Position numbers and translations under genes: made by a program
Shown: positions 10,801 through 13,800 of the stretch, piece by piece
How the letters are laid out: each line of letters begins with the position of its first letter
Position numbering within the stretch: position 1 is the stretch's first letter
Origin: Ranitomeya imitator
Taxonomy: Eukaryota
Reading direction: 5' to 3'
DNA: 64,000 nucleotides
Assembly: GCF_032444005.1 (NCBI RefSeq)
Contig: NC_091283.1
Location: 233,244,001-233,308,000, forward strand
Notes under the pieces: generated by a model
What the model was told of the DNA's origin: nothing
Seen by the model: the letters and a program-made list of their open reading frames with translations, nothing else
Database searches by the model: none

Positions 10801-13800
10801 AAACATACTCAAGCAGAGTCATCACAAAATCATTGTGGAGCCAAATGGTTACCTCGTGTATTCAAAAAGTATTGAACTGCCTTGAGGCCCGCCTCATGAT
10901 GAATACTTGAGTACAGGGCCTCTACATCTATTGAGATAAGTGTTGTCCCTGCTTCCACAGAGACCCCATCCAATTTTGTCAATAGATCAGTTGTGTCTCT
11001 CGTATAGGATGGCAGGGCTACAACAAATGGCCTCAACACCTGGTCGAGGTAGACGCTACTGTTTTGTCCCAGAGCGTCTATCCCCGACACTATTGGCCTA
11101 CCTTTAAGCGGGGGGTACCCCTTATGGATTTTTCGAATTGCATAAAATGTCGCAATGACAGGGCTCTTAGGTAAAAGGAAATTCAGTTCATTTTTTGAGA
11201 TCAAGTGGGCTTCCAGGGCTCTGGTTAGAATGTCGTTTAGACTTTTTCTATACTCTGGGGATGGGTCACGACGTATCACATCATATGTCGCCTCATCGGC
11301 CAAAATGTCCATACACATCTTGACATACTCTACCCTATTCATCAGGACGGTATTTCCCCCTTTGTCCGATGGCTTTATGATCAAAGAGACATCGGACTGA
11401 AGGCATTGTAACGCGGCTTTTTCTTCGTTGGATATATTGGGGTTGGCTGACCTGTGTTTAGGGTTGATTCTCTTTATTTCATCCACAACCAGCTTTTCAA
11501 AAGCATCAATAATTCCGTGATCACAAGGGGGCGGCATTCTTGTGCTTCTCCGTTTCAGGTCGGTAAAATGACCTTCTCCCGGGTTTCTATCCCCCTCTTC
11601 TGCCAGGTCAGCCAAAAGGCATACATCTTCAAAATCCTCTGGCAGGATGCCAAGCTGTTGACATTTATTCCGATCACTATTTGCAAAAAAAATTTTCCAC
11701 CTTAATTTCCTCAGGAATAAGTTTATATCCTTGACCCATGTAAAGGGATCAAAGCTGGTTGTGGGAACAAAAGAGAGCCCCGCCTGTAAGATGGTTTTCT
11801 CGGGTTCTGTCAAGATGTGATTGGATAAGTTAATGATGTCGTTCTTCCCTTCGCCGTTCATGTGGCGTCTCATGATGGTATCAGAGGTACTACCCATCAT
11901 TAGTGCGTCACTGTTCGTCCCCTCAGATGGTATCTTATATCTCGATTCTCTAAAAAAGACGGAACTGCAGAGGAAGTACCAGATGAGGGCGGCATATTTG
12001 TTTCCCCACGTACTGGCCCTCGCCATCTTGCAGAGTTACCTCTTTTATTTTTGGCCTTGAACCGTCTATAGGGTCTAAACGCGTCTCTCGGCTGGAAATC
12101 AGAGTCAGATGTCTCTACGTCTGAAGAAGAGATATCGGCCCTAGTAGATGGTCTGCCGTTACCGGCATTAGTGTCAGTAAACAAATAAGCCCTCTTTTCT
12201 TTAAACTCTGTGAGATCTCTAAGGAATTTTTTGTGTTTCCTTTCTTTAAGGGCAGCTTTATATTTATCTACCGCTACTTTAAGATTTTCTTCCTTGCTGG
12301 CAAAATCCCCCACTGTTTTATGTTTGAGAATCTCATCAATTTGTTCTCTTAATTTTTTTGAGGAGACTTCAAAAGTCCCTTTTTCTTCCTCTAGAAGAAT
12401 TTGCATAAATTTTAAGGAAGAAGCGATGGATTCTTTTTCCCACCTTTCTAGCAGTCTATCAGACTTAACTCTCTGGGCTGGAGTGATATTAATTCGTAAA
12501 CCGCGTGGAACAATACCCTGTTTTATATAATTGTCCAAAGATTGGATCTCCCACCAGGATTTTATATTCTCTTTATAGGTGGTTTGAAGGTCCGAAAATA
12601 GTGTTTTTAGACTTGGGCTTCCAGTTGGGCCCGTATCTCCTTCTGTCTCAGAAAACACTTCCCTAGCTTCATCCAACCAACTGCTCGTATTCAAGGATCC
12701 CGATAGAAACCCTGCCATATCACTAGAAGTAGACAACCAACTAGAATACTATAAGGATATATTTAGATTAGACAACCAAAAAGAAACGCAATATCCTAAA
12801 AAATACTTTATTAATAATATCTAAAATTATCATAGAAAAAATTACTTAAATGTATGCTACCAACATCAACCACCTGGGTTCGGGTAGGGTAGGAAAAATT
12901 CAGGAAGTAGTAACAAATGTATTCCTGACACAGTCCCTGTTAGGTGGCCCTATAGTATCTTACACCTGCCTAACAGCGGAGGTTGGCACCCTAAATTGCG
13001 ATGTGGCGCCCCCGCTCCACGTCGACTGTCCCTTCTTACCCTACTGGGCCCTACCAACTACCCACGCCCAGGAGCCCCACAGACATACACACAAATTGAC
13101 CAAAAGGTCACACTAACCAAAAACGTGAAAAAAGGTGAAAAAAGTGTAACAAAACCTACTAAAAAACAACGCAGCAAAAAATAGTGCTGCGTAAAAGTCC
13201 ACTAGATTACATGTATCCCAAGGCTATGTCAGCCAAACTGGTATATATATTGCTCGAAAAAATATAAATAATGATACACAAGCAACAATCAAAAACCAAA
13301 GTTATGGGGTACAGTAGAGCACCAATATCTTGTGCTCATAAATACTTCAGAGGTCATAAAAAATAGGAACCTCTGGTATCTATACCAATATGTCACTATC
13401 TTTGTTAGTACATGACCTACATGTCATAAACGGCAGACCTATACCTAGGACCCATACAAGAGGTAAATTCCTAGACTAAATGTCTAAGATATACGGAATA
13501 GCAAATATATCAGCTCACTCAGTAGGTGTTCATATGTTTAGGTGATATATAAATTTACACCCTAGATACCATATGGATTCAGCATCAGATGTCAGGTATA
13601 AAAAAATGAGCAAAATATTCATCAAAAAAGAAAAAATAATTAAACACAACTGAAAAAGTGTCTGCTATGTCTGGTATCGCATATGATGTCTCTCATTTAG
13701 ATTGGGCCAATATATAGAAAAGCCCAGCACACCTGAGGCCAATCCCTCATTCTTTTCATATAGGTAAATACTATGCTCAGTCCTATGAGCGCTTATTTGT

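Follow-up and report, generated by a model that had tools for sequence, protein, structure and literature searches.

In this study a 64,000-nucleotide (nt) stretch of the Ranitomeya imitator genome (contig NC_091283.1, positions 233,244,001 to 233,308,000; hereafter the window) was analysed, and its minus strand was found to carry a Penelope-like element (PLE) whose coding region is divided between two overlapping open reading frames (ORFs). Programmed -1 ribosomal frameshifting at the heptamer U UUU UUA probably yields the ORF1 protein (ORF1p) together with a rarer fusion of ORF1 to the reverse transcriptase (RT) and endonuclease (EN), and this appears to hold for a broad lineage of Neptune-type elements. 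The full unit runs from about 12716 to 6360 in window coordinates, as judged by self-BLAST, Tandem Repeats Finder (TRF) and tblastn with intact relatives, and its features are collected in Table 1.

Overlapping reading frames and the candidate slippery site

The first frame, ORF1, is opened by the program-made ORF list at an upstream TTG (12736). A second minus-strand ORF (12026-10830) lies in the -1 frame to ORF1 and overlaps it by 127 nt. At the site ORF1 reads GTT CCG TCT TTT TTA GAG, which places T TTT TTA in the X XXY YYZ register, and after a -1 slip the reading becomes AGA GAA TCG and onwards (R E S R Y K I P), followed by IINLS...GLSFVPT. The sequence-only reading of the window had described an intact ORF1 of 272 amino acids (aa) overlapping a -1-frame RT/GIY-YIG ORF by more than 120 nt, with the heptamer in zero-frame register and a slip leading to IINLS...LSFVPT, and had counted two other decay frameshifts in this copy. 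The sequence and the ORF list agree with it on the overlap, the register and its continuation were confirmed by reading the sequence, and both decay frameshifts are real (near 10835 and 10508). The foreign 378-bp insertion at 9462-9839 is missing from that description.

In the favoured explanation, the helical ORF1 is followed by an RT/GIY-YIG frame at -1 which lacks a conserved start codon. Most ribosomes would terminate at the ORF1 stop and release ORF1p with its conserved C-terminal Y.LR.R tail, and a minority would slip back by one nt at the heptamer, read the next codon (AGR) as Arg and go on in the RT-EN frame. The predicted ORF1-RT-EN product measures about 1,070 aa in intact family members. 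The slip, its efficiency and the relative amounts of both products we infer from the conservation described below and from what is known of U UUU UUA.

Conservation of the heptamer and of the frame offset

Within Ranitomeya imitator, Logan contigs from two DNA runs (X2 and X3) were aligned on 11300-12800 at an identity of at least 85%. This gave about 240-250 family contigs, which range from below 90% to above 99% identity, and among them no indel with a share of 5% or more was found in the T-run region (11950-11960). The -1 offset is family-wide, and a private single-base indel or an assembly error behind it is ruled out by these contigs together with the diverged relatives.

The comparison at the DNA level covered nine homologues (L001/L002, L003-L007, L008 from assembly GCA_933207985.1, and L009) whose ORF1 identity is 24-51%. 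TTTTTTA followed by G stands in the same register in all nine, where the flanks are unalignable. The ORF1 stop lies 12-43 codons past the heptamer, with the -1 offset, in each of these relatives, while the flanking codons have wholly drifted. In every relative the -1 frame runs on into xINLS..GLSFxP, and the intact ORF2s of L007 (822 aa), L008 (811 aa) and L009 (839 aa) all end in the GLNE motif of GIY-YIG. If only the x-F-L peptide were constrained, the joint chance of finding T TTT TTA in all nine, calculated from the codon usage of each ORF, would be about 4e-14. Judging from these alignments, the heptamer and the frame offset are kept beyond coding constraint.

Two further features bear on the translation of both frames. 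After the slip the first codon is AGA or AGG without exception, an alternation which is synonymous (Arg) in the ORF2 frame and an E/G switch in the ORF1 frame; as it is silent only in the ORF2 frame, it argues for selection on the transframe reading. Past the site, the ORF1-frame tail motif (Y).LRDRxKWGY persists in L007-L009 and in the window family, with synonymous exchanges among its Leu and Arg codons, which argues that translation of ORF1 also continues beyond the heptamer as far as the ORF1 stop. The conserved Y.LRDRxKWGY tail is made only where the frameshift does not take place, and the fusion protein is without this motif. This ORF1-only tail suggests a function specific to free ORF1p.

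At the protein level, at least 35 of the best 150 ORF1 homologue clusters carry x-F-L-(E/G/D/S), placed 5-55 aa ahead of the stop in a low-complexity tail that is not conserved elsewhere. Only S, P, D, N, G, V, A and T occur as x, and each of these residues has an NNT codon.

Table 1. Features of the Penelope-like element and its surroundings (window coordinates)
Feature	Position	Strand	Remarks
Slippery heptamer T TTT TTA (U UUU UUA)	11951-11957	-	In ORF1 zero frame; next base G at 11950
ORF1, 272 aa, intact	11900-12718	-	ATG 12718-12716, TAA 11902-11900; stop 17 codons past heptamer
ORF1-only tail past the slip site	11900-11950	-	16 aa then stop; family Y.LR.R motif; overlaps ORF2 frame
ORF2, first piece (-1 frame)	10833-11956	-	IINLS, GLSFVPT, DKG, FYAIRKIHK, start of RT; ends at decay frameshift
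ORF2, second piece (other frame)	10508-10837	-	RT core with YIDD; between the two decay frameshifts
ORF2, third piece	9840-10505	-	RT thumb and linker; CGHCSFC (CX2CxxC) Zn-finger-like motif
ORF2, last piece	9132-9461	-	GIY-YIG endonuclease (GVVY..C.C.C..YVG..GLNE) and stop codon
Foreign high-copy repeat insertion, 378 bp	9462-9839	.	Breaks RT-EN linker; gap in tblastn match to intact relatives, contig depth
3' untranslated part of unit	6360-9131	-	Pseudo-long terminal repeat (pseudo-LTR) at 6360-8530, with 263-bp internal tandem repeats (self-BLAST, TRF)
Upstream 5'-truncated tandem copy (5' pseudo-LTR)	12717-14574	-	91-95% identity to 6360-8530, direct orientation (self-BLAST); ends exactly at ORF1 start codon
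Inverted 5'-truncated pseudo-LTR copy	14569-16708	+	97.4% identity to 8530-6398 reversed (self-BLAST)
Putative hammerhead ribozyme core CUGAUGA-GCCCC...GGGGC-GAAA	8018-8049; 14120-14151; 15051-15082	-; -; +	One per pseudo-LTR copy (pattern search)
24-bp satellite, insertion target	4887-6350, resuming at 16697-16988	.	Resumes beyond the element (self-BLAST, TRF)

Transcript evidence and points against frameshifting

Three runs (X1, X5 and X6) were recognised as complementary DNA (cDNA) by the SMART template-switch oligo sequence present in their loose ends. A cDNA contig of 925 nt over 11100-12014 crosses the heptamer with 2 mismatches and 0 gaps; it has six T's and is unspliced. Splicing had been considered as a way of joining ORF1 to ORF2; the cDNA contigs are colinear through the site, and no splice joint ending at 11950 was found in any run. 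The element is transcribed in this unspliced six-T form.

A number of points weigh against programmed frameshifting. The RNA evidence consists of assembled contigs only, and these drop rare variants. A stimulatory structure 3' of the heptamer was not found, as the minimum free energy z-scores were about 0 at 60, 90 and 120 nt in 10 sequences compared with dinucleotide shuffles, pseudoknots not being rigorously searched, and folding of 121 nt of this copy gave no consistent downstream structure. The downstream hairpins that are seen by eye vary in position and strength, and the sequence-only reading had named no convincing downstream stem or pseudoknot by eye. The register of the heptamer is shared by inheritance and represents one event, not nine. 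Further, TTTTTTAG is conserved and would make a plausible 3' splice site as well, and the U6 run could permit polymerase slippage. The downstream tract itself shows a mild purine bias.

Alternative explanations

Polymerase slippage survives best among the alternatives and is itself unlikely. Here RNA polymerase II, or the RT of the element in a prior cycle, would add one U to the U6 run in some of the molecules, and since one added T would join the ORF1 and ORF2 frames, the same fusion would be obtained. The conserved element is a homopolymer run, as this explanation expects, and the contig data are compatible with a minor seven-T RNA species. However, no seven-T variant reaches 5% among the genomic family contigs, so that RT slippage has left no trace, and tandem tRNA slippage requires both the X XXY YYZ register and the invariant A at position 7, whereas stuttering requires neither, although the Arg codon accounts for the A as well. 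Moreover, six U's are short for efficient stuttering by polymerase II.

Splicing is to be considered quite unlikely. It would turn TTTTTTAG into a conserved 3' splice site, with the cut directly behind it, joining ORF2 to an upstream exon; the invariant TTTTTTAG does have pyrimidine-rich sequence before it in most relatives, and PLEs are known for intron retention according to the Fig. 1 legend of PMC8557442. For an acceptor, however, AG after a stretch of pyrimidines is sufficient, and neither six invariant T's nor the A is called for; the F-L dipeptide is retained in the at least 35 clusters mentioned above. A donor scan found no conserved in-phase donor, the sole recurrent GT belonging to the Trp-Trp-Glu codons at about residue 54, and its use would remove the entire conserved ORF1 core. 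In addition, ORF1 is open across the putative intron and past the site, where it has a conserved peptide motif, and the colinear cDNA contigs show no joint at 11950.

Independent translation of ORF2, by leaky scanning, reinitiation or an internal AUG at 12026, would make the heptamer irrelevant and is very unlikely. This copy has an ORF2-frame ATG at 12026-12024, but this Met is not conserved; no Met in the ORF2 frame is present between the upstream stop and the N1 motif in L004 and L009, and in the other relatives the Met positions are not conserved. Such a start also leaves the nucleotide invariance of the heptamer unexplained. Finally, a decay artefact, in which this copy or a recent master had its single PLE ORF broken by a one-base deletion in the T-run, has been refuted. 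In its favour, indels arise readily in homopolymer runs, two other frameshifts are present in this copy and single-ORF relatives exist, but the layout is common to all family contigs and to 9 relatives down to 24% identity, several of which have intact ORF1 and ORF2.

Programmed frameshifting at U UUU UUA may have a wider form, which we put forward tentatively and hold to be possible rather than probable. A large, old vertebrate lineage of endonuclease-bearing (EN+) PLEs would make its RT-endonuclease only as an ORF1 fusion through the -1 shift, without a conventional downstream stimulator, and free ORF1p would have a separate role in the ribonucleoprotein. The purine-rich downstream tract, the nascent chain or ORF1p itself could then serve as an alternative stimulator, the last of these amounting to autoregulation, and the non-shifted ORF1p with the LRDRxKWGY tail would have its separate function in the PLE ribonucleoprotein.

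The ORF1 protein

A full HMMER search against 1.84 billion representatives returned 567 homologues of ORF1, which are mostly stand-alone proteins of 220-360 aa. Alignment, motif mapping and the tree show that the ORF1 domain corresponds to the N-terminus of single-ORF PLE proteins, where it is in frame with the RT. The shared signature of the domain is WW(E/N)..SLE.Y...IVPRGLRI...P...WE...CS...K.KKF.RD..DF, and the fused examples P0060 (1024 aa) and P0140 (1058 aa) have RVT_1 and the GLNE end. In the ORF1 tree, which is unrooted, a split with a Shimodaira-Hasegawa-like approximate likelihood ratio test (SH-aLRT) value of 98 sets 49 fused or FL-less clusters apart from the remainder. The window ORF1 falls in a 16-member clade (SH-aLRT 97) with FL in every member extending that far, and FL-type ORF1s are also present on several deeper branches.

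The fused P0140 nests among the FL-type stand-alone ORF1s P0047, P0056 and P0075, and reads SSDFGES where these neighbours have SSDFL(G/S); from this sequence comparison, it may come from a lineage in which the frameshift site was lost and the ORFs became joined again. Many homologues from the single-ORF clade (P0052, P0053, P0057, P0059, P0074 and others; P0052 and P0059 are without FL) are about 243 aa long and stop exactly at the VINLS start of their fused relatives, and at least two of the homologues of about 243 aa are gene models with a short predicted intron. These may be annotation artefacts or a second type of ORF1/RT boundary. P0033 was rejected as an in-frame fusion: it comes from assembly GCA_001663975.1 (Xenopus laevis), where its gene model lies on a decayed copy and includes a predicted intron.

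The AlphaFold model of ORF1 has four long helices over residues 11-173, predicted with a local distance difference test score (pLDDT) above 90, followed by a disordered tail which is acidic, Ser-rich and Arg/Gly-rich. No significant match was obtained for ORF1 in a profile search against PDB or with Foldseek against PDB and AFDB-SwissProt. Against Pfam there was only a sub-threshold TPR match, with no Gag and no zf-CCHC. The description of the element as gag-pol-like in the sequence-only reading is thus apt for the expression logic and fails for the ORF1 protein, which shows no CCHC knuckle, capsid fold or structural match; ORF1 is gag-like in position, not in fold.

The ORF2 enzyme and the class of the element

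ORF2 of the window is 37-57% identical (tblastn) to intact ORF2s carrying RVT_1. It has the features of a PLE-type RT, for which the N-terminal motifs xINLS, GLSFxP, DKG and PK.HK and the motif YxDD are diagnostic; the window reads IINLS, GLSFVPT, DKG and FYAIRKIHK, and YIDD. At its C-terminus the Pfam match to GIY-YIG (E = 3e-4) is slightly below the curated cut-off; the domain has cysteines between GIY and YIG (CCHH motif) and the GLNE end. The CX2CxxC linker reads CGHCSFC in the window, and CGDCKFC, CGHCKAC and CGRCRAC in L007-L009. A CX2-5CxxC motif in the linker is reported as absent from Penelope/Poseidon (PMC8557442); since the motif is present here, the locus is assigned on its sequence motifs to the Neptune-type EN+ PLE retrotransposons. 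This particular copy is dead, having two decay frameshifts in ORF2 and the 378-bp insertion.

Anatomy of the locus

The foreign repeat that interrupts the RT-EN linker is unrelated to the element and is rich in TTTTCCGCG-like units. Its contig depth in the cDNA runs is in the hundreds to thousands, compared with tens on the adjoining element sequence, and because of this depth the repeat family is considered to be abundantly transcribed or embedded in many transcripts.

Scans of 6000-17000 with Rfam, using gathering and E-value thresholds, gave no hammerhead model reaching threshold and no frameshift element. The lone Rfam match in this interval was a microRNA inside the foreign insertion, and was set aside as a chance match.

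The 263-bp internal tandem repeat of the pseudo-LTR is located at 7182-7958, 13532-14045 and 15156-15936, with three units in the 3' copy, three in the inverted copy and two in the upstream copy; the pseudo-LTR copies differ in length because of this difference in repeat number. The ORF1 ATG (12716-12718) straddles the exact junction of the upstream truncated tandem copy and the full unit. As the direct repeat stops at 12717 and the 3' end of the full unit (6360-6362) reads ...CTTCTGGGTATA, at least the A of the ORF1 ATG comes from the preceding pseudo-LTR, and ORF1 is therefore startable only within a tandem or pseudo-LTR context.

Regarding the surroundings, a 20-bp satellite at 2825-4667 (92 copies, 95% matches) adjoins the CATATA-rich 24-bp satellite, which is also found at 20809-21059. 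Insertion of the PLE into the 24-bp satellite agrees with the reported bias of PLEs to microsatellite-like targets. Positions 35526-35704 of the window are 179 N, an assembly gap or masked sequence.

Relation to known systems and significance

The arrangement was compared with the gag-pol genes of human immunodeficiency virus type 1 (HIV-1), other retroviruses and LTR retrotransposons. The heptamer U UUU UUA is identical to that of HIV-1 and stands in zero-frame register, the upstream ORF ends shortly past the site, and the polymerase would be made solely as a fusion, with a presumed excess of structural protein over enzyme. On the other hand, neither a stem-loop nor a pseudoknot was found to be conserved at 5-9 nt past the heptamer in the PLE, pseudoknots not being rigorously searched; its ORF1 is without CCHC knuckle, capsid fold or structural match, and it is a target-primed PLE and not an LTR element. 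The L1 (LINE) proteins ORF1p and ORF2p offer a second comparison: there, too, a target-primed element has an RT-EN ORF preceded by a coiled-coil-like helical ORF1 whose tail is basic and probably binds RNA. However, the PLE ORF1 matches L1 ORF1p neither in sequence nor in fold. The ORF2 of L1 relies on unconventional reinitiation for its translation, whereas in the PLE described here the enzyme would be made as a fusion.

Among PLEs, an ORF1 separated by a frameshift is reportedly a feature of the endonuclease-less Athena type. In Craig et al. 2021 (PMC8557442) the legend to Fig. 1 says of some PLE type that ORF1 may be set apart through a frameshift with a pseudoknot; the accompanying text does not name the clade. 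Such elements are like the present one in having ORF1 upstream of the RT with a frameshift between them, and they differ from it in that the element here is an EN+ vertebrate PLE for which no pseudoknot was found, without a rigorous search for one.

The closest relationship is with the single-ORF EN+ PLEs (Penelope/Poseidon and Neptune; PMC8557442). The element shares with them the DKG and YIDD motifs of the RT, the C-terminal GIY-YIG with core cysteines, the CX2CxxC linker of Neptune/Nematis type, pseudo-LTRs with tandem and inverted partial copies, a putative hammerhead core, insertion into a short-period satellite, and an ORF1 homologous to their N-terminal domain. The difference is that this domain here forms an ORF by itself, which ends in a stop behind a conserved tail and is linked to the RT only via the -1 site. 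EN+ PLEs are presented as single-ORF elements in the abstract of PMC8557442 and in PMC6515669, and annotation pipelines therefore expect a single ORF. From killifish, a Neptune element whose two ORFs do not overlap has been reported, without comment on recoding (10.1101/2025.05.22.655539). Full-text literature searches returned no description of frameshifting in EN+ PLEs. The sequence-only reading had held frameshifting not to be a described PLE strategy; this is too strong in view of the legend cited above, which gives it for some PLE type.

These outcomes have consequences for annotation, as the ORF1 of these abundant vertebrate elements is now found among hundreds of orphan "hypothetical proteins". 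For the biology of the element, the ribonucleoprotein is likely to be built with a stoichiometric excess of a helical, RGG-tailed protein over the RT-EN. The range of -1 frameshifting in cellular genomes would gain a well-conserved natural case, with the HIV-1 heptamer and no obvious stimulator. If the wider proposal made above is true, PLEs would be a third class of retroelements that has arrived independently at gag-pol-style recoding.

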